DNA of 64,000 nucleotides from Syncephalis fuscata S228 (taxonomy: Eukaryota; Fungi; Zoopagomycota), in assembly GCA_025786725.1 (NCBI GenBank), contig JAHLTZ010000012.1:186001-250000 (forward strand), read 5' to 3'. Numbering within the stretch: position 1 is the first letter of the stretch; each line of letters starts with the position of its first letter. The translations under genes and the position numbers were made by a program. This document shows positions 1,225-59,548 of the stretch, piece by piece. The notes below the pieces were generated by a model. It saw only the letters and a program-made list of their open reading frames with translations, was not told the origin of the DNA and searched no databases.

Positions 1225-1911
1225 ATTTACGCAATCACCATGATGATTAATAATTTATTGTGTTAATAGTCGTTTATAATAATATTGATGTATGTAATAG
1301 CATTATCTTTCCATAGAATAGATTAAGTGTAATAGAACATTGTATTAGTAACAATATTAAACACTTAAATAATAAATGTAACATACTATTTAATTTCATC
1401 AAAACATTTGAGATTGTTCAGTATTATTGTTGGCTATGCGTAGAAAGATTGATGGATACTAATAAAAGCCATTGATTGCAATTCCATATTGTTCCGCAGT
1501 TGTTATTGTTGTTACTATGTACAGTGTGGATTATTGCGTCTAAATGGCCTCTTCTATTTTCCAATCTTCTACTGTTGCATTTTAAGCATATTTGCGATGT
1601 AAGATAATTGTCTATGGTGACAAAAGGTAGGACGACTAGCATTTCTAATGTTCACCATTCTCTTGAGCATTCTTGATATCAACTTGGTAGGTGCAGGTTC
1701 ATTGCCAGCCATTGATAAAGCAAATAGCCTCCACCATATAAAATAAGAGAAATAAAACTAAGGATTGAATAATGTTTTTATTGATGTTTAAATACACATG
1801 TTATTTATATTGTTATATTCAACATTATCGGATAATATATTACTGAATAGAACAATAAGATAGTGATAAAAAGAAGAGTGAAATAAGTAAATAAAAATGT
1901 AGAAGTCAAAG
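1225..1911 (-). mobile_element. Non-autonomous Fanzor/TnpB-derived element (subfamily B), terminal hairpin missing
   Basis: Close inverted copy of 7284-7980. Encodes VTIDNYLTSQICLKC...NCGTIWN (RuvC-II/Zn-ribbon/RuvC-III-like). Left end reads CTTTGACTTCTACAT on the minus strand. Confidence 0.75.
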
Positions 1912-7283: not shown

Positions 7284-8018
7284 CTTTGACTCTACATTTT
7301 TATTTACTCATTTCACTCTTCTTTTTATCACTATTTTATTGTTCTATTCAGTAATATATTATCCGATAATGTTGAATATAACAATATAAATAACATGTGT
7401 ATTCAGACATCAATAAAAACACTATTCAATCCTTAGTTTTTATTTCTCTTATTTTATATGGTGGAGGCTATTTGCTTTATCAATGGCTGGCAATGAACCT
7501 GCACCTACCAAGTTGATATCAAGAATGCTCAAGAGAATGGTGAACATTAGAAATGCTAGTCGTCCTACCTTTCTGTCACCATAGACAATTATTTTACATC
7601 GCAAATATGCCCAAAATGCAACGGTAGGATATTGGAAAATAGAAGAGGCCATTTAGACGCAATAATCCACACTGTACATAGTAACAACAATAACAACTGC
7701 GGAACAATATGGAATTGCAATCAATGGCTTTTATTAGTATCCATCAATCTTTCTACGCATAGCCAACAATAATACTGAGCAATCTCAAATGTTTTGATGA
7801 AATTAAATAGTATGTTACATTTATTATTTAAATGTTTAATATTGTTACTAAACAATGTTCTATTACACTTAATCTATTCTATGGAAAGGATAATGCTATT
7901 ACATTACATCAATATTTATTATAAACGACTATTTAAATACAAATAAATTATTTAAATTATCATGATTAATTGCGTAAAAATGTTTGCTGCTTTAAAACTC
8001 CAAATTTGGGAGTCAAAA
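7284..8018 (+). mobile_element. Non-autonomous Fanzor/TnpB-derived element (subfamily B) with inverted termini
   Basis: Left end CTTTGACTCTACAT; right end ACTCCAAATTTGGGAGTCAAA. Frameshifted coding remnant FALSMAGNEPAPTKLISRMLKR...VTIDNYFTSQICPKC...HTV...NCGTIWN at ~7460-7790. Confidence 0.75.
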
Positions 8019-19720: not shown

Positions 19721-20322
19721 TGGCCAAATGACTATATTTAATAGCATTCAATATATTGAACATGATGATCAGTGGTGAGTGACATCAATCATCAAATACT
19801 CATTATTGTAGATTCATTATCCAGTATACATATATTCACCGTTTACTTACATCATTCCCACTCCATTCCCACTTCTATGTATCATTCTATGATATAATAG
19901 ATACATTCTACTGTTTATATGTTCCAATATACATTACTCATTCCACTCATTGCATTATATGCACTATAACTTTAACATCGCTTTATATGCTTTTTCACCG
20001 TACATTTATCATTTTATGTATAATTCTATACTCGCATAGTTTTTCTGTATTAAAAACTGTTTTTATTTTTGTTCTAACTTTATTATTAATAAATGTCGAC
20101 TAACTCCGCTTATTCATTTAGCAAGCTATATGTAGTTGAAATCTATAACAATATAATGCTATATAATAGTATGACATGCATTGTTAACGATATAGGTAAA
20201 CGGTGGATATATGCATACTGGATAACAAATCTATGATGATGAGTATTTGATGATTGATGTCACTCACTACCCATCATCATGTTCAATAAATTGGATGCTA
20301 CTAGATGTTAGTCATTTGACCA
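19721..20322. mobile_element. MITE with ~125-bp terminal inverted repeats
   Basis: 19721-19845 (TGGCCAAATGACTA...GTGAGTGACATCAATCATCAAATACTCAT...) is the reverse complement of 20197-20322; no ORF inside. Confidence 0.85.
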
Positions 20323-22647: not shown

Positions 22648-22920
22648 TTTACAAGATTCAACTATTGATACTGTAACGTAGTCACAAGGCAATAACGTAT
22701 CGTAAACAAAAGAGAAAAGGTTGTAGTACGCGAGAAATAATTGTTGGTTAAGTAGTGGTGGTTTTAAACAGCGCTAATACTCATTATTAAGAATAAATTC
22801 ACCTGATTCTAATTACTTTTTAGTGTTTATTACTATTCCGGTTATTGTTGTTGATTAGTCTATTACTTTCGAGTGCCACCAACAATCCACTCACTTGACC
22901 ACTCACGTGCTTATGGCTTC

Positions 22921-23564
22921 TCAAAAACCGCAGTGTAAGTCAAGCGACACTGGCACCTGACGTCTAACTTGTGTTTCGTTTAGTACGTGGAAGCAGTGTG
23001 TTGACGGTGGGCGAGCGAGAGCGATATGTGCAACGTCAGTTAGATTCGTTGGAACGTGACAACTATACCGAACGTACTGACGTGATCTCAAGTAATGAGC
23101 TAGGTAAGTGGCCGTGTCATAGATAGATACAGCGATTCTAGCTACAAATCCTGTAGCGCGTTCGTCACGACGTCCCAAGGGAAAGGTAACGGCATTGGCA
23201 AAAGGTCGCTGGACACTAGCAACACTGATTGCGGAATCAGTACGTGTATAAACTTGCCGTAATTATAGACTATTTAGCTAATAAATTATTATTGCTATTG
23301 ACGACAATAGCAAATAAGTAGACTGCCAGCCGATGTACCCACTTATTTGACAGCAGCTATTGGGCCATCGACACAGCCTTCGCGGAAATTTTGCTCAGTT
23401 TGTGGATATCCTTTTGTTGCTTAAAATGAATACAATATTTAGTTGGATTATTAACTATGCAATACATTTGTAGCCGGATATACCTGTACACGTTGTGGCA
23501 TGCAATATTGCACGCTTAATTGCTTGGAAACACACAAGGAAACAAGGTAGATAGTGTTATTCAT
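22921..23564 (-). CDS. Possible small spliced gene, function unknown
   Basis: GC-richer open blocks separated by intron-like AT segments; no recognised motif. Confidence 0.25.
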
Positions 23565-24040
23565 GAATTAGCATAAGAATATAAGTTTAAACAATAATAG
23601 ATGTATGAAGTTTATCGTATAAATAAATGGCTGTCAATTCAAAGAATATATAGATCATTATTGTTGATCAATAGTCTGTAGCAAGCGGTGATATTATAAA
23701 TATCAAGTAACTGTGAATAAAATTAAACGTGATATCATTTGAATGGTGATGACTTTTGACAGCTAATAGTTAAATAATAAAAGTTAATCATTTGAGCAAC
23801 TATTTATATTGCTATTCCTGCACTACAATACACTAATATTATATAATATGTAAATATAGCACAAGATGCACAACAAATTAATTTATGCTTTTTGTACATA
23901 AATTATGTCGATTAATAGCTACTTACCAATATTTACATCAAGCATGAGATGCAATAGAAATAGAACTTGCTAGTATCAGCCGTATACTTATTAATGGAAA
24001 ATATAGTTAACAATGGCTTAGATTATTATTAATCCTGGGA

Positions 24041-24810
24041 CTGGCTTGTACTTTGACCCCCACATTTGGAGTCCCCAAAGCAGCAAACCATTTTACGCAA
24101 TTGATTGTAGTGATTTAAATAGTTGATTGGATTGATTGGATTGATTTGTGTTCAAATGATTATTCACAATAAATATTTACGTAATATAATAACAGTATCA
24201 TTTCCATAAAGTAGAATAGAATTAAATGTAATAGGACATTGTATTAGTAACAATTCTAAGTATTTAAATAAAACTTACATTCAATATCTAAAAAGTTTTA
24301 TTGAGACAAACATGCGTTCTCTGCGGTGCTTGTGTTGGTTTGAGATGGTCTGGCAAACTCAGCTGGTCTGCCATTTCCATCCCAGATTGATTCGATGATT
24401 TGAAAAATATTTTTGCTTGCCATGACATACCGATTACACACCACTTGGCAGTTTTGGCAGACTAAGGTGGTGTGGTGGGTATGACCATTTACAGCAATCT
24501 TTTCTATCAGACTTTTTTCCTTACAGACATGACAAATCTATTAAATTGTTAAATTGTTAAATAAAATAGTGATTACATTAAATACTTACCTGAGAAGAAA
24601 GATATTTATCGATTTTAATGGCAACAAGGTCTGCACGACGCTCTCGTCGTTTCAACATTTGCCAGCACCTGTTGACAACAGCAGATCGATGGCCCTTGTA
24701 TACATTGTTCTGCTTGCCAAACATTGCATCGCCGAATACAATAAGTGGCATTTTGTCAGTTGTTTGTAACCTTGCTGGATGTCATCCTTCTTTCTCTCTT
24801 GGTGGATCAC
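24041..24810 (-). mobile_element. Fanzor-bearing element remnant (subfamily A): 3' coding part, 3' non-coding module and terminal hairpin
   Basis: Terminus CTTTGACCCCCACATTTGGAGTCCCCAAAGCAGCAAAC at 24051; 24051-24270 aligns with the reverse complement of 7830-8018. Confidence 0.8.
24298..24751 (-). pseudogene. Intron-containing Fanzor (TnpB-like RuvC/Zn-finger) C-terminal fragment
   Basis: Exons 24751-24590 and 24537-24298 joined across a 52-nt GTAAGT..TAG intron give MPLIVFGDAMFG..KGHRS..LVAIKIDKYLSSQ|ICHVC..HTTLVCQNCQVVCNRYVMASKNI..GNGRPAEFAR*. An in-frame TGA lies just upstream. Confidence 0.85.
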
Positions 24811-25211
24811 TATTTAATTATATATAAATAATTATTCATACTTTACAGCTTTTAAAAAGTGTAGTCATAAAATATAATTATTATGGCTATACAGTTCTTT
24901 GTATTATAAAAATCCAGAATTTACCTACTAAATGTTCCAAGTGTTGATATGGCATTACATAGAAAACACTATATAAGAAGACATCAAATATTATCAATAA
25001 AATATTTAAGCTTTTTTCAATCCCTAACTGCCTTGACTACCCTGACCAGTTCTTAAATTAATGTAATTACTATTTTTATTGCATAAACGTAACAAATTAC
25101 AACAAAAGTAATCTTTATTATATTTATTTTATTAACTTAACATTAATTTTATCGAAAATGCCAAATAAATTGCTTATTTTTATCACACTTTTTGTTTTCA
25201 CTTGATATTGA

Positions 25212-25974
25212 AAGTTTGGTTGAACTGTACTTTGAATCCCACTTTTTTTATTTACTCACTTCACCATCTTTTCTTATTACTATATTATTGTTTTATTTGA
25301 TAATATATTATATGATAATGTTGAATATAACAATATAAATAGTATGCGTATTTGAACATCAATAAAAAACATTATTCAATTCCTGGTCTTTATTTTTCTT
25401 ATTTTATATCAACACCTGTTCAAGTAGCCTCAACGGCATGCCTTATATTCTGGTTACAACTGTCATCACAAGATCTTTCTGGTGAAAACACTCAGCCAAT
25501 TATTATCGCATATGGTGGAGACCATTTGCTTTATCGATGGTTGGCAAATAAATTGCACCCACCAAGTTGATACCAAGAATGCTCAAGACAATGGTGAACA
25601 TTAAAAATGCTAGTCGTCCTACCTTTTTGTCACTATAAACAAGTATCTTACATTGCAGATATGCCTAAAATACAACAGTAGAAAATTAGAAAATAGAAGA
25701 GGCCATTCAGACGCAAAGAAACCACACTGTACGTAGTAATAACAATAACAAATGCTGAATGACATGGAATCACGATTATATGGCTTTTATTAATATTCAA
25801 TCAATCTTTCTACGCATGGCCAACAGTAATAATGATCGGTCTCATGAATTTCAAGTAATCAAATGAAAACACTATACTTGTGTTTTGTTATGCATAACAG
25901 TATGACTTCAATTGAAACGAATTTTGCTTTGAGAACTCCAAATGTGAGAGTCAAAGTTCAGTTCAGCCAATCTT
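25212..25974 (+). mobile_element. Non-autonomous Fanzor-derived element (subfamily B) with ~30-bp imperfect TIRs
   Basis: Left end AAGTTTGGTTGAACTGTACTTTGAATCCCAC versus right-end reverse complement AAGATTGGCTGAACTGAACTTTGACTCTCAC. Remnant PIIIAYGG...C*MTWNHDYMAFINIQSIFLRMANSNNDRSHEF. Confidence 0.8.
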
Positions 25975-26403
25975 GGTTATCTGGATTAAATAGTTTAGAA
26001 ATTACTGATTTGGCACTTATATTGTAGTCAATTATTATAATATAAAAACAGAAATCAATGCTTTATTGATATTAGCATTGTCCAAATAAAGCCAATGCGT
26101 TTATTAAATAGGCAGTACCATGTGAATGGGAAGCATGTTGAACTCAAACATAGCGTCACCTCCTTATTCTAGAATAATTTTATTTACTTTTTAATGTTTT
26201 GATCAAGTAAAATATCTTTTATTGGAGGTCACGAGTCAGCGGATATTATAAATGCTATATATATATAGCAAAGAACAGTTTGCTATAAACCAAGTCAGCT
26301 GCTTTTCGACTCTCCATAAACCATATCCCGCAATTATATCCTCCTCTCTACCACCACATCGCAAACGATACCTCGGCTATACACAATTTACGATTTTATC
26401 ACA

Positions 26404-41996: not shown

Positions 41997-44900
41997 ATGC
42001 CGCCTATTGTGCTTAAAATTAAAGGCAGCCGGCCTTTTCTTCCCTTCGCAGAGCTTGATAGCGAAGAGGATTTATCCAAAACATGGCGTGTGTGTACCAA
42101 AGTCAAGGACTCATTAGAGAATGGAAGCCGACTGGAAAATCTTAGCTGGCGACTATGGCATCTACATCAACTAGTGGCGAGCGGTAAGCGGAAGCTAAAC
42201 AATGAAGAAAATAGCGATGGCGCGTCGACTAGCAACACACAGAGCGGCACCGCGGGAACCAGCTCGTCGATGACGAATGATGTACCCATGATGCTGGACA
42301 GCATACCTGATCTTGGCGGACAATCGGTCGCGAATGGGACAGAATTAGATGTTGAGAATAAGCGATGCACCTTCCGTACACTGTCCAAGAATGCCACACG
42401 TATCTTGGATGGAGACGAGAATGCTGATCAACGAGACTTTGAAATGCGTGTACGCCATTTTAGTCCTTCTTCCGGTCGCAGTGCACGTTCTTCCAAATCA
42501 CCCCAAGTTACAAGCAGTTTACCGACGGCTGATAATAACAGCCCAAGCATGCGGTGTCCGCCAGCAATGAATATACAGCACAATATTAATGCTAACAACA
42601 ATATTAGTAATGGTAGTAATGGCCAGTTTAGCTATACTAACGAAGTAGCAAACCAGCTATCGTCTAAATCAAATAATACACTTTGGCTTCAACAGGCATG
42701 TTCAATGCAAGCAAATGATATGGCCAATGCCCAAGCATCTGTTGCGTCAGCGGCAATGCCTAGTGCCAATCTACCTAATGGTATGCCCATTCCCACTCGT
42801 ATTATGTCTCAGGCAAATCAAGGCCGAGCCATTACTACAACAACAAATACAATGCTACCAGCTCCATCGGCCGTTTATCCGCCATATCAGGCCTACACCG
42901 CTGGCAATGATCTTAGCCAATTAATGGGTGCAGCAGCCTCGATATTTCCACAGCTTATGGGTATTCCTGGCCTAACCAATAATGTTGGTATGGCTAATAA
43001 TGCGGCTCCACCGTTGGCTGGTACGGCTGCTGGTGTACTTTTGGATGATATGTTTGGTTCATTTCCAGCATCGGCGTATGTTGGTGATGTCAATCAACCG
43101 CCAACTATTGAAATACCATTGGAACAAGTACTAAATGCTAATGGAATTAACGTTGCAGCTGCCGCGGCGGCAGCAGCAGCAGCAGCAGCCAATCCTGCTT
43201 GGTCCACTGCGTCGACACCATCGGCAACACAGGACCAAATGAATACCAATTACTTTGATGCATGGCTTAATGTCGCATCGGGTCGTTGGCCAGCTGGAGC
43301 AAATACTTCGCAGTCGACAAACACATCACCGCGGACAGCTGCGCAACTAGTAAAACTAGAAACACCGCTGACACAGCCATCATCAGCAACTACATCACCG
43401 AATCTAGTTTACAATACCGGAAATATCGCTACATCAAATAGACCCGATGCTGCTATACCATCTAATATAATGGGATCGGTCAGTACATCAGCCACCAGTG
43501 AGGCAACGGCTTCGTTAAGCGGATACACTACACCTACTACTACAACATCAGTTGGAGGAGAAAATCTATCTGCAGTTGTTAATGCTGCACGCCAGCTATT
43601 ATCAGAACATGCTGAATCAGCAAATAGACTACCAGTGTCACCAGTTTCACTTACACCAGCATCTGTAACAAGTGTTAAATTAAACGATGGTAAATCTTCT
43701 GTATCATCACCGGCTACATTGGCAACGGCAACACCAGCACAGCAACAGCCAAAACAGACTAAGCAGAAGTCAAAGCCAAAGCCAAAGCCAAAGCAGCAGC
43801 AGCAACAACAACAACAGCCGCAACAGCCACAGCAACAATCTTTAGCTATGCTGACTGCATCCAATCTGGCCAAATCTTCAAATACAGCCAAGTCAATATT
43901 TCCTACCTATCATAATACTGAAGATTCACTAAAACTGTCAACATCAGTACCAGTCGTGCCAGGTACTATAGCGACCAACAACAACGGTTTGACTACTGGA
44001 AACCAACCAATTAACATTATGGCAAAGCCGTCGGATCATATATCTTTGGTTACAGATCCAGCTCAGCTATTTTGTCGCAATTGTGGAGTTACATCGACCC
44101 CACTTTGGCGACGATCTATTAATGATGATATCCTATGCAATGCATGTGGTCTTTAGTAAGTTTAATAATACTGAATTGTTAGGATAGTTAATATTTACTA
44201 ATAAGCATTGCTTACAGTATGAAATTACACAATATGGCCCGTCCAAAGTTGCGCAAAGCACAGCAGAAAGACTTGCAGCCAAGTATTGAGCATTGCGTTA
44301 ATTCCAGTCCAATACCCGGCAACAATAAATCATCTGTGTTTTGTTCGAACTGCTATACAAATAATACACCATTATGGCGACGTGACGACCAAAGCAACGT
44401 TTTATGTAATGCCTGTGGTCTATAGTAAGCCATTAATTAATACAATCATATTGCTACTGATACTGATACTAATATTAATAATAGTCTAAAGCTGCATCAA
44501 GAACGGCGTCCACTTAGTTTGAAGACCGACGTTATTAAGAAACGTCAGCGATATGATACGCCTAAAAAGAGCAAGAAAGCAAAGACCGGTGAAGAGGCCA
44601 GCGAAGAGAATAGCGTTGAAAACAGTCCAGATCAATCATCATCTGGAACATCTTTACAAACAACGTTTATGGATACAAGTTCAACAGAACCATCACCATG
44701 CCATTCTCCGTCAACACAACCTATTGGTCTAACATCTGCAACATATTCACCGTTACAAAATCAGCAACAGCAACATTCATTAAATATGCAAATTAAACAA
44801 GAACCCGTGCTAATGAATGGTAATACAGGCTTAACTAATTTGAATGGTGTTGATTTCCAAACAGCTATTCAATCGGCAAACTTATATGCAACTAATGGAT

Positions 44901-46370: not shown

Positions 46371-48013
46371 TTATTAAAACAATGTCATTTAACTCTAAAA
46401 GATTTATTTAAATAAAAACTATTGCTATCATTACGATTACTATTATTATTAACATTATAATTATAGTAAATAACAGTTTTTGGTAATATTTGAATAGTAT
46501 TAAATAGTTGTATGGATTACTTGTAAATTCTTATTATTTCGCCCACTTTTCTTTCTAGCTACTATTTTATTATAACAATGGTAAGTAGAATCTAATAATA
46601 GTATAAAGGAGTGAACTATTGTAATGACGAGTTCATAGTATCATCCTTGTTCTTAGTGTGCCATACGGCATGTAAGATGATGATAACATACTAAAGCGTC
46701 GGTTCTTTACTTTAAGTAAGGCTCTCGGGCAAGATTCCAAACATCTACTGGTTGAGAATCAGAGAGATGACGGGTGCCGGAACAATAGCCACTGTCTTCA
46801 ACTATAAACTATACTATATACTATTAATAACCACTAACGTAATAACTGTTACTAGATTACAAGTACATAATATAACAAGTTACAATATCAACAGTATAAT
46901 AATAAAGATCAACCGTAACATTGATAATAGTACTATTTATTAATCCTATCTATATACAATAGTAATAGTAAAAACCATAATAATGCTTAGTCGTCAATGT
47001 CGTCATTTTCTATCTTGCCACCACTCAATTCGTATCTGACATCATTTTTACCTTTTAATTGTATGATTGGGCCAATCATTACTCTATAGAAATTACACAC
47101 ACACACAAGCCACTCACTCACTTTTTACTTACTTTTATTGATTGCTCTTTAACAAACCCTTGCTTATCTACAAAATAGTGATGAATTTGTAACACATACA
47201 CAAGAGAAAGAAAGAAAAAAGACATCTATTTTTTATATATACATCGTATTTACTCTCTATTACTACTTATTAATAGTGAAGTAATAGTGGTGGTCTATTT
47301 TTTCTATACTATTTTTCATTTTGTCTAATACTGTTACAACTGTTGGTCATCTTTTTCCATTTACTCTCTTCTAACTACAACTATTACAACTGTGCGTCTA
47401 TTACGTCGCTTTCTTTTCCCGTCTATACATCAGTAACAATAATAGTAGTTTACAGTCATTATTGGTGGTGTTTATTCTTGTATACTCGTTTACACTATTG
47501 TTAGTCAATTGCGCGCGTATTTGTATTGCTCCTTACTAGCCGCACTATACCACTGCCACTACTACTATTGCCACTACTACTACTACTACTACTACTCGTT
47601 TCTTTGTATGTCCTTTTTGGCACAACTGTCTACATTTATACGTATATACTAGTCGCTACTGACTTGCCCGAGTCTTCCTTGGTGACAGACTATACCATTG
47701 TGACACCTCAAATCTTTTACAAGTAATTGCAATTGGTTTAATAACCAAGCCTATTCTTTTCTTTTGAATCGCGTAAAGGTACGTGGAATGTGAAAGGGCG
47801 CAAATAGGCCGAAGTTGATGGCAGCCACTATAAGATAGCACTACTAACCGATCGAACTAACATTCTCTTCTATAGTCTATTACTACTACTACTACTATAC
47901 TAGACACTTTGAGTGGATGCCTCTGTGTACAGAATAGACGCTACTATCTTATTGACTTTTAGCGTTACGTGTCACCACAATCTCGTCATCTTGGATTTGT
48001 GGCCTCGACGGCC

Positions 48014-51000
48014 ATGTCCACAAATGAATCCGAGGCTAATCGACGTTTGCAGGCTCAATCCGAGTCTTTGCCTGCAGCGTCTGTATCGGCCACGAGCCGT
48101 GAACCAACCGAGTTGTCTCAACCTATAACCACATCGTCGAATCAACAATCTACACCGCCAGCGTCAATTCCAACGACCACTGCGGCAGCAGCAGCAGCAG
48201 CGGCAAGTGCGGCAGTTGGTATTGCATCGAGTGTTATGACGAGCTCAAGTGTAGCCGCTGCCTCATTTGCCCGCGGTCCTTCTTCCGCACGACTAGGTGG
48301 ATTATTCCGCGTATTTAGACCACGGAAAAGTGCATCTGAAGAAGAAACATGGCGTTCTATGGGCACTGATACTCAACAGGACCTTGCTAATCCAGAAATG
48401 TTATTATCCGCTGAAAATCACGCCGAAAGTGATGGCTATCGTTTATTAATGGCATTTAAACAGGCCAATTCATCAAGTCAACGGGCCCGTGTAGCCAGAA
48501 ATATTGCTACAGTAGTCCGAGAACGCCGTGTCGATCATTTAGAGGCTATTTGGGCCGCTGTATCTGAACTATTAACAGCCAATGAATCTGCCGATGCGCG
48601 CCGTGCCGCATTTGAAGTCATGCTTGCATGTATTCACGGACAGTATACACGACTCGATTTACTACGACCCGAATTCTATCGCACCCTACAAGACTATGAC
48701 CAACAAGAAGATACAGAACTGCGTATTACTGCACTTCGCGCCCTTATTAAAGACGGTAGAGATATTAGTGGGTTTGAGAAAAGCGTTGGCCGAATGCTAC
48801 TTGAATGGCTACGCCAACTATTTGAACGGGCGCAAAGAGCAGCCGCCCAAAGCCTTGACATTTCTCAACTCACCTCTGGCTATAGTGGATCATTATCACG
48901 GTCATCGGGTAGCGGTAATGGCAGTGCACGTCTTTCTGCACTGGCCGGCAGTGCTTCACAACGTGTAGCCGCATCCAGTTCCAGCAATCCATACCATCCA
49001 CAATTCAGTGCTGTGCTTTCACTACTGGTCAATGTAGTTAAATTCAACGCATCCTGTTTTGAAGAACGAGAAACTGCCCGTTTAATTGAAGTTGTTTGTC
49101 GAATATGCGATAAAACACTCTATCCAGAAGATGTTCAAGGCTGTCTAGGATTTATGGATGTCGCTGTACGCTATGCCTATGTACCGCCCGCTGCTTTAAC
49201 CAGCTATGTACGCACACTATGTCGCTGTGTTAATCTAGACCAATTTGCCCGTAATAGTTGGGCTATTATGCGTAACTTACTTAAAAGCCATTGTGCACAC
49301 GGGGCCATTCTTATTCTCTGCTCCATTCTTGAAGATGATCGGCATGCATCGGTAGTGCCTTTATTACGCGGTGCCGTCTTCTTTCTAGGCATGTCCAGTT
49401 GGGGATCACAGCGAGTTGAAACGCTATCACATACGTTTTCACGCGCCCTTAATGCCATGAAACGAGCACTGTCCTACAAACGCGCCAATGTAGATTATGA
49501 AATACTACTGAATATGAATCGACTACTTAAGAAATATGCGGCTAAATTAACAACATTTGAATGGGAAATCTATTTTGATATGCTTGAATATCTAACGCAT
49601 TATGCACTCAATCGTCATAAGAGTGATCAACCTAGTAAACAACACTCACCTATTAATCCAGCTAGTAGCGTTGATAATACGGCCACTAGTCAAGTACCCA
49701 CCGAATTTGTAGATGCTTCTATGGCCACACTCATTGATCAACCGGACGATGAACTGCCATGGATGATTGTAAAAGCATTTGCGCGTATTGTAGCTCGATT
49801 GCAAATTGACTATCAACAACGTGAATTAGCCGGTCCAACCCATCGATTTATTCGTGTACTTGAACGACTACAACCATGTCTTACTGAAGAATCAGCCCTA
49901 CTGCTACTTGATTATTATAGATCACAAGATGCATTCTATCCTGTATCTATCGACTGGTTACAAGCATTGTCAAGTGCTATTAATCGATTCTATCGAGAAG
50001 AGAAACGACCAAAAATACGCGCCCGAATGTTATCTATTGTCGCCGAAGTCTATGAAGGCACTAAAGATATGTATGCCAATCAAGTGGTACCCACTCTATT
50101 GTTACCAATGTTATCCACTACATACAATGAAACAGATGATATAGTGAAACAACAAGCATTACAACTATTATTACTCATTGGCATGGATTGTGATCCACTT
50201 GATCAAATAACAACGCTATCCAATGACATAACAGTGCCAGATACTACAAATACTACAGATATAACAATGGCTAATTACAGGTATTTAAGTGGTATACTTG
50301 AAGCCATTGTAGCCTGTCTATCCTGTACATGTCCATTCCCTAATAGTACACATCATTTCAATGCATCAACATCAAAATCTAAAGTAAATGGCGGTCATAG
50401 TCCAGTGTTAACTCGTTCAACATTACGTGGCGTTCAATCGACAATGAATAGAACTACGTCGTCATCCAGTGGACCCTCCACTTCTGCAACCACGACACAT
50501 ACTGGTGGTGGCAGTCTATTCGGATCGCCTAATGCCACCAATACACCATTTATACCGCGCGTTATTCAATCTAACTGTTATGCCCATTGTGCTGCTCGCT
50601 GTCTAGTTACGCTATTTGATGATACACTCTATCGACCAGATCCCACACCATCTCTAATGATATTTCGCGAAATGACTGAAGCACTGCGTAATGATACACT
50701 CCATGCCGCGACTCGACTCATTCTACTGCATTGTCTATTACGATTAAGAGCCAATCCGGCTGATCATCGTATTTATTTGGTGGACTGTGCCTCAGCTGGT
50801 GTAGATCACACTGAACCACCGTTTACTGTACCATTACTGGCATCATTGGCCGCGGGTCTATCGGCTGAGTCAGCCATACCGGGACATACACGCGCTGGAC
50901 CAGGTCGACGACGGTTAACGATGGATACAGAGCGTATTGGTGGATATACACGTCCTCCACTATCTAGTGATCCTACACAATTGGGCACTAGACGTACAAG

Positions 51001-54000
51001 TGAACCACCACTCCCGCCTATACCATTAAGTAATAGTCTAGGATCACCTTCTGGACTAAGGAATGAAACCATTTCTTCAGTATTAGAAGAAAGTATCAGT
51101 AATACGATTGGTGAATCAATAGATTCAATTCAATGGACACCACCTCGATTAAGCCATGGATTAGTTTCATTCTTGCCTCAAAGCGATAATCATGATAGCA
51201 ATAACATGAATAATAGTAATTATTACACTAAAGATGGACCCCGTGAAGGTATTCACCATCCTCCAACCGATACTACTATTAATTCTACTACTATTAATAC
51301 AACAATAACTAATTCATCTTTAAATCGACAATTATTACCGGTATCTGAATATGTTACCGTATTGATTGATCTATTGACTAGAGAACGTGATTGGACACTT
51401 TATGAATCAGTATTGGGTCAATTTCTTATTCAATTGTGTAGTAAACATTTATTCTGTGGAGCAGTTGAACCATTAGAACAATTCAGATCATTTCTATGTC
51501 AACAAATTCGATCAGGTCGACTTGGTGAAACTGTGGGCAATTTACCAAATAATCTTCGACGGGCTGATGTATTTGTCTATGCCTATCGACTACTAACGGT
51601 GCTTATAAGCTATAAGCGCGTATTTACTAAACAGCAACAAGATGAAATGGTCGTTACTTTCTATACCGGCCTACAACGATGGTCACAAACGGCCCGTGGC
51701 TGTATCCACGCCCTATCCGTTTGTCTTTATGAACTGCCCCTTTCAATGACCAAGATGTTACCGAGTATTGTTGCTCAATTATCGCAGATTATGTCAACTC
51801 AGTCAGTGAGTGCGCATATTCTTGAATTTCTATCTACATTAAGTAGATTGCCACATTTATATGTCAATTTTGTGGAGAATGATTACAAAATGGTATTTGG
51901 TATTGCTCTGCAGTATATCAAGTATAATAATGCTACACTGGCGGCGGGTGAACAACCACGACCTGGTACCGGTCCATTAACGGGTGCCTCTACGGCTGTG
52001 GGACAACACGCCCTGGCTCAATACGTATTAGTACTGGCCTATAATGTTATTACCTTTTGGTTTGTTAGTCTACGATTGGCCGATCGACGTAAATTTGTAT
52101 CATTTATTGTACGTGGTCTACTACTTGCGAATGAACAGCCCGATAGACAGAAAGAAGGCGCCAACTTATCATTGGATGAACAAACGGAAACCTGTCTAGA
52201 TATGTTGGCCCGATACACGTATGCCAATTGTACACCTAGAGCAGAAAAGTCATTTATTAGTGAAGCACTGTTAGACACCAAACAATCTATATCGCGTACA
52301 TGGATTATGGGCAATGCACTTATTACGATTAAAGCAGCTCGATCTTCTGGATGGGCTCAAGTCATGGCCCGTCGACCCAGTGGTGTTGCTTCATTCCTCG
52401 TTAAATTAGAGAATCGACAAAAGGATGAACAACCAGATTTAGTATCGCTACCTGCGCTATTAATGGCTCACTGGGATCCAGATACTTATACAACGCTACT
52501 TGTTGGTGAACAAGATGAAGATAAAGAGACTAAGAAGGATGAAGTGGTGGATAGAGAGTCAACGATGGCCGGTATTAATCTATCTAAACTGAGTCAAATG
52601 GCCCGTCGTAGCGAATTACTAGGTGTAGAACTTGGACTGCGTTCCAGAGCCAATACTGTATCATCGATGACCAGTATTACACCTAAAGAAGAAGGAGAAG
52701 AAGAAGGAGAAGAAGAAGAAGGAGTAGAAGTAGAAGAAGATCATGATGATAGCAATAATAATACAAATACGATTACGCATAGTGACGATGAAGACGAAGA
52801 TGAAGAAGATGATATGTTAAAGGGATTGGGTATTCGAGGTGAACATGGCGACACTTTATTAGTAGATGAAGAGCCAGAACCATCTATTATATCATTAGAA
52901 TCAGATAGTCAAAGTGTTAATAAAGGATTGAATACAGCATCATCACCCACATCACGTAAAGATGCCAGATCAGTGGCAGCACAAGCCGTATTAGGTAGTT
53001 GGCAAAAGAAACAACAACAGCAACAACAACAATCATTAGTAACCACAGATACTGCTGATGACCGTATGATGCATAGTTGGAATGGATCTTATACAGCACC
53101 TTCATCTAGAGCAGGTTCATTAACTGAATCTACCCTAGTACCAACATCCAATATAGGATTAAGAAAGCGATCGGTAGTATCGGCCATTCTAGGCATGCAA
53201 GATACCATTCCTATGTCACTACCACCCACACCGATGCTCTATAATGGATCCAATACCAATATTGCCAACACTAATGGTCAACCAATTCGATCTATGGGTT
53301 CACCAATGATCGGTAATGGTCCTATTAGCAATAGTGCTTCTACTTCTATTTCACGTACAACTAGAAAGGCCGATCCTTATTTAGATCCTGCCTATTTGTT
53401 TATCCAACTATCAAGCTATCCTGACTTAAATGCCACTAATATGCCACTTCCCTTGCCAGATGACGATGCCACCCAACGATCGATTAACATATTGGATCGG
53501 ACACCTGTCGTGGATTTCCATAAAGTAGGGGTTATTTATGTGGCACCTGGTCAATCCACCGAAGAAGCCATTCTTGGTAATCGAGTAGGATCATCGCGTT
53601 ATTCGCGTTTTCTTAATGGATTAGGTGAATTGATTCGACTAAAGAACTGTAAAGATGTTTATACCGGTGGATTGGATACGGAAATGGATCTTGACGGTGC
53701 CTATACGTATTATTGGAAAGAGGCGACAACACAGCTTATATTCCATGTCCCTACACTGATGCCCACTCAATTAGAACGGGATCCACGATCGACGGGCAAG
53801 AAGAGACATATCGGCAATGATTTCGTATCTATTATCTACAATGAATCTGGTCTACCCTATGCTTTTGATACACTACCGAGTCAATTTAACTTTGTACAAA
53901 TCATTATTACCCCACTGATGGATCGTGATTCGGGTGGTCGATCGACACGGGCAGGCCCACTTTGGACGACCGATCCACGCCAGTTAACTTCACCAGAAAC

Positions 54001-54540
54001 GGCGTATTACCGAGTACATACGCAGTGTCGACCTGATATGCCGGATATTAGTCCTATTGAAGAACCAAAAGTGGTTACCCATGCAGTATTGCCTGCTTTT
54101 GTTCGACAAATTGCCCTTCATACAAATATCTATGCCCAAGTATTCTTGCAAAGTAGTTCATCCGGTGGCAGTATAGAGTACATCGCTAATTGGAAAGAGC
54201 GATTACGTCAAATTAAACGAGTAAGAGATAGAGTAGCTACGGCAACAGCAACAGCAACAGCAACAGCTACTACTACTACTACTACTACAGCAACAGCAAC
54301 AGCAACAGCCACAAGTAGTGCATCACAACAACCACCCCACCACATGTATCTGGTAATAATAATAGTAATGGATTGTTACAAGATCCACATTTACAATATC
54401 ATCAACGACAACGTTCTTCATCAATGGAATCATCCATAAATACACCAACTCATGTCAGTCATCTCTATGCCAATAATCAATCAACAGATGAATCTGGTGT
54501 AAGATTAGAACAAGTCATTGATTTTACACGATTTACTTAA
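48014..54540 (+). CDS. TSC2: Tuberin (TSC2), Rheb GAP; apparently intronless
   Basis: LLRGAVFFLGM, CIHALSVCLYELP, HILEFLSTLSRLPHLY, HKVGVIYV, YTGGLD, KKRHIGNDFV. The conserved-looking end IDFTRFT* at 54540 is in another frame (shift near ~54340). Confidence 0.95.
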
Positions 54541-58378: not shown

Positions 58379-59548
58379 TTACTCTAATGGAATCCATTCC
58401 TTTGGTTGACGTAGTACTTCCATCAGTTGGGCCTCGTTACTATTAGGTGCGGGTATATGTTGATACTGCCAACGAGCAGTTAATGGCAGCGACATAAGAA
58501 TACTCTCGATACGTGGACCAGGTGTCACTAGACCGAATTTAGTACCACGATCATGTACTAGATTGAATTCAACATAGCGACCACGACGTAATTGTTGCCA
58601 CTGCTTCTCCTCCGCGGTATATGGTTCATCTGCGCGTCGTTTAAGAATAGGTAGATAGGAACGAAGGAAGCTACGACCTGCATCCTGAACAAATGCAAAA
58701 CCTTCTTCAGGTGTGCATGCATTCAAGTCATCAAAGAAGATGCCACCCACACCACGGCGTTCACCACGATGCTTCACGTTAAAGTAGTCGTCGCACCATA
58801 GCTTGTACTTGCGATAACTGGCGGCCACTGGATGTCGATGGCATACATCCTTTAGTGTTTGATGGAAATGCTTAACATCATCGGGATAGAGATAGGAGGG
58901 TGTTAGGTCACAGCCACCGCCGAACCACCACACGGGTGGTGCATCTTTGCCAGATTGCTCTATTTCAAAGTAGCGATAATTGGCATGTACCGTGGGGGCC
59001 TTTGGATTATGTGGATGCAGTACGAGTGAGATGCCCGCAACAAAGAATGGATACGGTGCATTCGTTGGATCTAAGTCTTTATGGTCGGTGCGCATTTGGC
59101 GTACAGCTGCTTCGGGTAGCTCGCCATGCACCACCGATATGTTAACACCGGCCTTTTCAAATAGACGGCCTCCCTGCATGACACAGGAAATGCCTTGACC
59201 GCCTTCATCGCGTTGCCACGACTCAATGTTGAATGGTGTACCGTCAAGTGTCGATAACTCAGTGACAATTTGTCGTTGCAATTCAAGCACAAAGCGTTGC
59301 ATTCTATCGCGCATAGGCATCGGTCCTTGTTTGGTTAACTCGGCAGGTAGGGGTGGAAAATCTGCTTCCACCTAAATACAGCATTAGTAGATTAAATGGA
59401 TTTATATGAATGGCTTACAGTTGGTTTGCCCTTGGTTTGTGTCAAGGTATTGCCATCCAGTATAGATTGTTCGGGTGGACCAACTGCTAGTTTATCCTAA
59501 ATCATTGTCAATTAAATTGTATTTTTAATATATTATATAACTACAAAC

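Follow-up and report, generated by a model that had tools for sequence, protein, structure and literature searches.

On the minus strand of the analysed DNA (a stretch of 64 kb, hereafter the window) there lie, in all probability, the inert remains of a Fanzor1 gene, comprising its last two exons with a lineage-specific 52-nt intron between them, a 3′ module and a right terminal repeat. Fanzor1 proteins are eukaryotic, transposon-borne, TnpB/Cas12-like RNA-guided DNA endonucleases. The locus is a new dead fragment of this well-described family, ordinary for the repeat-rich genome that holds it; that Fanzor genes can have introns and a rearranged glutamate, and that their elements may be devoid of a transposase, is published already, and neither a new nuclease nor a new mechanism comes from it. 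Its value is one for annotation: the intron hides the gene from an ORF-based track, and its 133-aa open frame, in fact transposon debris, might be annotated wrongly as a small zinc-finger protein.

Translation of the minus strand reproduced exactly the peptides and coordinates proposed in the earlier note on this DNA. The remnant of the penultimate exon (exon 1 below; 24590-24809) truly starts at 24809, immediately after an acceptor TAG, if compared to the copy of the same family on contig C317. Its open part (24751-24590) encodes 54 aa, from MPLIVFGDAMFG to IDKYLSSQ, the ATG of the frame occupying 24751-24749 and an in-frame TGA being located upstream of it at 24784-24782. The last exon (exon 2; 24298-24537) contributes 79 aa (24537-24301) with ICHVC, CQNC, NRYVMASKNI and GRP and ends with the stop codon at 24300-24298, so that both exons together give 133 aa. 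According to translation and profile alignment, the penultimate exon covers the β-strand of the canonical TnpB RuvC-II glutamate (here FGD) and, 43 residues further, the alternative-Glu motif, and the last exon covers the TNB zinc ribbon, RuvC-III and the stop. The cysteine codons of the ribbon are positioned at 24534-24532, 24525-24523, 24459-24457 and 24450-24448; the ribbon is intact, CHVC and CQNC being aligned to columns C719, C722, C745 and C748, invariant in the profile described below. No credible family was found in the other frames and on the opposite strand of 24298-24810.

All searches were carried out with the exons taken separately. Exon 2 alone matched Pfam PF07282 (Cas12f1-like TNB) with E 6.6e-4 and 20.2 bits against a gathering score of 26.3, as well as NCBIfam IS607_TnpB at E 0.06, and exon 1 alone had no match in Pfam or NCBIfam. 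Since exon-only scans were too weak, a profile was built from full-length relatives found via an intronless paralogue. The own genome (29.4 Mb, 371 contigs) gives many six-frame matches to both exons, including distant paralogues where both parts are contiguous and intronless and where IDEYNTSK and WQRDVNASRNM are kept. The intronless paralogue with a 131-aa frame (L022:4537-4929, minus strand) passed the gathering score of PF07282 (37.7 bits, E 2.3e-9), and its comparison with 1.84 billion representative proteins returned 580 matches, among them full-length proteins of 690-1037 aa with the similarity at their C-termini, the named ones belonging to Hesseltinella vesiculosa, Absidia cylindrospora and Mucor flavus. 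Twenty-five full-length fungal relatives from this search constitute profile A1. Over its positions 18-629 it matches the Fanzor1 of Spizellomyces punctatus (SpuFz1, 8gkh) with E 2.6e-56, followed by those of Guillardia (GtFz1, 9cer; E 6e-47) and Parasitella parasitica (PpFz1, 9cf0; E 3e-43), whereas for the giant-virus TnpB-like protein (9b0l), TnpB and Cas12f the similarity is confined to the C-terminal ribbon with E 6.6e-8 or weaker.

In hhalign, exon 1 was aligned to positions 521-568 of A1 (E 1.4e-10, probability 96.9%) and exon 2 to positions 569-642 (E 1.4e-12, probability 97.7%), and an hmmsearch of A1 against every ORF in the 64-kb window ranked the two exons on top (5.7e-14 and 1.5e-9). 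Similarity of the exons to the Fanzor1 profile is thus far above chance. Single-sequence searches of PDB with the paralogue and with protein P0009 gave marginal matches only; it was the profile search that proved decisive. Since both exons match A1 and A1 matches the Spizellomyces Fanzor1 over its full length, the locus is assigned by homology to the C-terminal quarter of Fanzor1, with the alternative RuvC-II glutamate motif, the TNB ribbon and RuvC-III. The order of motifs proposed in the earlier note (RuvC-II, CxxC..CxxC, RuvC-III) is borne out by these alignments, and the suggested TnpB/Fanzor kinship is narrowed to Fanzor1, which the exons fit better than TnpB or Fanzor2. Its description of the family as uncharacterised does not hold: the family is Fanzor1, with annotated relatives in Mucoromycota and three available structures (8gkh, 9cer and 9cf0).

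The two exons are embedded into a repeat unit of ~1.1 kb, designated family A, which extends from 25180 to ~24047 on the minus strand. It starts with a non-coding 5′ leader (24837-25180), 91% identical to oriented positions 1875-2223 of the C317 copy (L041, C317:728400-738300, minus strand). Between the leader and the penultimate exon, 24810-24836 comprises the deletion joint and ~22 nt from the end of an upstream intron with its acceptor TAG (24812-24810). Downstream of the stop codon, copy comparison and the inverted repeat delimit the 3′ non-coding module with the right terminal repeat (24047-24297), which is common to other Fanzor relic families in the genome. The C317 copy has ~2.5 kb extra between the equivalents of 24836 and 24822, so the sequence of the window joins L041 position ~2213 to ~4737. 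Absent from the window copy are the ~2.5 kb of N-terminal coding sequence (WED, REC and RuvC-I) together with the branch-point region of the upstream intron, and owing to this deletion the 5′ leader is contiguous with the 3′ part of the gene. The loss of the N-terminus noticed earlier has therefore the form of a ~2.5-kb internal deletion relative to the C317 copy, and the window copy can be regarded as an internal-deletion derivative with its joint inside the intron, ~22 nt before the acceptor.

The deletion is shared by at least eight copies, the same joint being present on contigs C46, C328, C312, C13, C339 and C301; a joint common to several loci implies that the derivative itself spread. 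A second subgroup (on C268, C361 and at another site of C24) has other sequence on the upstream side of this point. Copies of the family are 80-90% alike. The stretch 8344-11580 of C359, a contig of 30.9 kb, is 99.2% identical to positions 22799-26039 of the window over 3.2 kb and, rather than another insertion, is probably an alternative haplotype or allele, or a redundant contig.

On its upstream side the family-A relic is adjoined head-to-head by unit B, a MITE-like repeat of ~750 bp located on the plus strand (25212-25974) and bounded by terminal inverted repeats of 35 nt (25212-25246 and 25940-25974). Genome-wide, 584 first-look candidates for unit B were collected, of which at least 40 are near-complete at 82-87%, and at most other loci it is oppositely oriented relative to A. 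Unit B holds its own, more decayed relic of a Fanzor C-terminus (~25640-25866; translation WNHDYMAFINIQSIF). Another inverted repeat, 36 nt long and 86% complementary, pairs 24047-24082 with 25925-25960, i.e., the right ends of units A and B. Further relics of the unit-B type lie in the window at 1427-1651 (minus strand) and 7560-7769 (plus strand), matching profile positions 550-600 with E ~5e-9, and both lack 100 bp found in the 25212-25974 copy. The window also contains an inverted pair of ~180-bp repeats (19721-19902 and 20141-20322; 80% identity), which may be another short non-autonomous element; this repeat is found near the family-A elements at L033, L035, L037, L039 and L043 as well.

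The only near-full-length member of the family is the C317 copy. Its ORF pieces follow in order profile positions 34-88, 148-183, 263-304, 331-432, 411-481 and 510-559, and it is the only copy having the RuvC-I motif AVDPGIS, which is absent from the window copy. This gene is also broken: its frame is shifted after the RuvC-I motif, in the RuvC-I-proximal region, and ~290 bp of unrelated sequence with a higher GC content stand in place of the last exon. In the whole-profile search of the genome, where the best 66 of 475 first-look candidates were scored, 65 matches fell within profile positions 467-636, that is, in the C-terminal quarter, the one exception (411-480) being on C317. Beyond the C317 copy, profile A2, representing the N-terminal three quarters, detected no more than three short pieces with weak scores. 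Thus an intact Fanzor1 was not detected in the 29-Mb assembly by exon-by-exon profile searches with the best candidates scored, a procedure which a very divergent or heavily intron-split intact gene could escape. The cautious expectation that intact members may lie elsewhere in this genome consequently found no representative, the best candidate being frameshifted and devoid of its last exon. Many C-terminal relics of Fanzor1 belonging to several lineages, along with no detectable intact gene, document that OMEGA-type nucleases once proliferated and then died out in a lineage close to Zoopagomycota.

The death of the gene leaves a question about the element. It is improbable, in our estimation, that either the 1.1-kb element or the A+B unit of 1.9 kb can still be mobilised as a non-autonomous transposon, for which the 3′ part would have been kept because of its cis-acting sequences, namely the right end and perhaps a template for fRNA. 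The fRNA of Fanzor1 is encoded where the ORF ends or further 3′, beside the transposon end. The last ~200 nt of the element occur in many more copies than the remainder. Within the family, however, conservation is lowest in the 3′ module (0.83 against 0.91-0.95), and this module gave no match in the Rfam search, no conserved fold (alifold consensus energy of −0.29 kcal/mol) and no unusual RNA stability (z = 0.03); an fRNA role of the module, though possible, is thus not supported. The presence of one deletion derivative at so many loci and the inverted repeats bounding both A+B (36 nt) and B speak for mobility, but the divergence among copies makes them old, and the sole near-identical one, that on C359, may be allelic or duplicated in the assembly. 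Finally, across families nearly all Fanzor matches of the genome are C-terminal only, which speaks for such a retained unit, but an intact Fanzor1 to act in trans was not found among the candidates scored.

A wider proposition, which we rate as equally improbable, is that Fanzor 3′ ends are in nonrandom excess across the genome, and that the last exons, the 3′ module and the right terminal repeat form the minimal cis unit of Fanzor-derived MITEs, mobilised in trans and outliving the nuclease. It is based on dozens of scored relics and several hundred candidates from at least three lineages, as against a single decayed N-terminal region. A cis-acting role of the retained 3′ unit, explaining why only the tails of Fanzor persist, is a mildly novel question, and the deletion derivatives provide a small natural series for asking which parts of a Fanzor element act in cis. 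For the locus itself the preferred assignment remains that of an inert relic.

The 52-nt segment separating the two exons of this relic (24538-24589, minus strand; GTAAGT...TTAAC...TAG) behaves as the intron proposed in the earlier note. The exon ends adjoin on profile A1 (568|569), and the BLASTP alignments of exons 1 and 2 with one Apophysomyces protein meet at its residues 270|271; removal of exactly 52 nt therefore restores colinearity, along with the frame, and the GT..AG of the segment sit, to the residue, where frame and homology resume. In the alignment of family copies the segment is 50-52 nt long and its GTAAGT and TAG are kept in nine of ten. One further copy has a 1-kb insertion within it. 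At L037 (C268:169400-179300), a family-A copy has ~950 bp inserted into the 52-nt segment, and this locus also holds a 131-aa open frame, a Fanzor C-terminus of the unit-B type (DLTSQICPKCN, WNHNHMASIDI).

In length and signals the segment resembles introns of host genes from the 64-kb window, such as the one of ~63 nt inside the zinc finger of an AreA-type GATA factor (GTAAGT..TACTAAT..CAG) and the one of 55 nt in the coproporphyrinogen-oxidase gene (GTAAGC..CTACTAAT..TAG). Another such intron lies directly upstream in this Fanzor gene, as can be seen in the most complete copy, that on C317. From these features we infer a spliceosomal intron. It appears to be restricted to this Fanzor1 lineage: paralogues in this genome are intronless at the site and colinear across it, and the Hesseltinella gene, with ~5 other introns in its model, the last of them ~70 codons upstream, has none at the TSQ|IC junction. 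The same intronless state of relatives and paralogues would suit the idea that the segment is no intron but an insertion by which the gene was disrupted prior to the spread of the family. We consider this very unlikely, as an insertion would hardly be expected to have exact GT..AG ends restoring frame and colinearity to the residue, to keep GTAAGT and TAG in nearly all copies despite neutral decay elsewhere, or to match host introns and the upstream intron of the same gene in size and signals; moreover, introns and intron gain in Fanzor genes are documented (PMC10530073).

Decay of the coding part is evident at the most constrained positions. Columns E712, W752 and D755 of A1, invariant in the 25 relatives, are occupied in the window copy by Lys, Cys and Tyr, respectively. 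The alternative glutamate is replaced by lysine (AAA at 24607-24605), giving IDKYLSSQ instead of IDEYLSSQ, found in most sister copies. In RuvC-III both the tryptophan (to Cys, 24438-24436) and the aspartate (to Tyr, 24429-24427) are changed, so that CNRY stands in place of the consensus WNRD, the family consensus at this site being WNRDVMASKNIF. Both replacements claimed in the earlier note (E to K and D to Y) are thereby confirmed at invariant columns; the loss of the third invariant residue, Trp of WNRD, is an addition to it, as is the recurrence of Lys in the C301 copy and of Tyr in the C46 and C312 copies. The upstream in-frame TGA, also pointed out there, is a mutated TGG (Trp) of the conserved EGWRPARL (compare NGKWRPLPF in Hesseltinella) and falls inside the exon starting at 24809.

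Frameshifts, stops or deletions are present in every family copy. Substitutions relative to the consensus are distributed over the three codon positions as 28:19:21 and 33:35:36, and identity of the exons (0.91-0.95) is not above that of the intron (0.95). Even spreading over codon positions and exons kept no better than the intron mean that the copies decayed neutrally. The view of the locus as a dead copy is upheld in each respect, by the replaced invariant residues, the stop, the missing N-terminus and the neutral pattern of substitutions. The window copy is, judging from its sequence, unable to make a nuclease, and RNA-guided double-strand DNA cleavage by it is expected to be absent, because three invariant residues are lost and the N-terminal three quarters are missing. 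A domesticated zinc-ribbon mini-protein with a non-nuclease role, translated from the ATG at 24751, can be dismissed almost entirely, since its spliced 133-aa frame is open in the window copy and its 99% twin, but all remaining copies are disrupted by frameshifts, stops, deletions or a 1-kb insertion, no codon-position bias is found among the substitutions, and the methionine is an internal residue of an ancestral exon extending upstream to 24809. Judged from sequence alone, the open frame of the window copy may still yield a short product.

Taken as a relic, the locus may have had the following history. A Fanzor1-only element of ~3.5 kb would have lost ~2.5 kb encoding WED, REC and RuvC-I by a single internal deletion, with the 3′ joint within the intron ~22 nt before the acceptor. 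The resulting 1.1-kb derivative would then have dispersed to at least eight loci, presumably by mobilisation in trans, and all copies would afterwards have decayed neutrally, the one in the window additionally gaining the changes Trp to stop, Glu to Lys, Trp to Cys and Asp to Tyr.

Comparison with known systems places the locus closest to Fanzor1 enzymes. It has the same C-terminal order as SpuFz1 (8gkh) and PpFz1 (9cf0), namely RuvC-II with the alternative glutamate, TNB with CxxC..CxxC and RuvC-III. The alternative glutamate of Fanzor1 is located ~45 residues from the canonical site and is essential (PMC10530073); the locus likewise has glycine at the canonical RuvC-II position and the Glu motif at the above-mentioned distance downstream. 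The possession of introns and the arrangement as a repeated element with terminal repeats are further points of likeness. Unlike these enzymes, it represents only the last quarter or so, without RuvC-I, with three substituted residues and a premature stop.

Fanzor1 is described in early-diverging fungi, including transposase-less elements (PMC3627910). In Rhizopus, Phycomyces and Mucor, such elements were reported by Bao and Jurka (2013) to have ends of the MuDR type and duplications of 9 bp (PMC3627910), and the Fanzor1-only elements of Mucoromycota (ROr, PBl and MCi), likewise without transposase and with terminal repeats (PMC3627910), are among the closest known systems. The closest named sequences are annotated proteins of the same group, from Hesseltinella, Absidia, Mucor and Apophysomyces, with 57-61% over exon 1 for Apophysomyces, and 44% for the 690-aa protein of Mucor flavus. 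Differences from the Mucoromycota elements are the host, which is nearer Zoopagomycota, and the TSQ|IC intron, absent from the Hesseltinella gene. Host genes identified in the window include the AreA-type GATA factor (41997-44156, plus strand), a tuberin/Rap-GAP protein (47969-54439, plus strand) and coproporphyrinogen III oxidase (58379-59371, minus strand), the last being 79% identical to its counterpart in Thamnocephalis sphaerospora and ~59-60% to those of Mucoromycota. Recent horizontal transfer from Mucorales was considered and is unsupported, as the identity of the Fanzor sequences to Mucoromycota (35-61% by exon) is not above that of coproporphyrinogen oxidase (59-60%).

With TnpB of IS200/IS605 and IS607 and with Cas12f the locus has in common the TNB zinc ribbon and RuvC-III, the match of profile A1 to these proteins being within E 1e-3 to 1e-8. 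It is distinguished from them by the eukaryotic setting, spliceosomal introns and the rearranged glutamate, and the match of the profile to Fanzor1 is full-length and far better.
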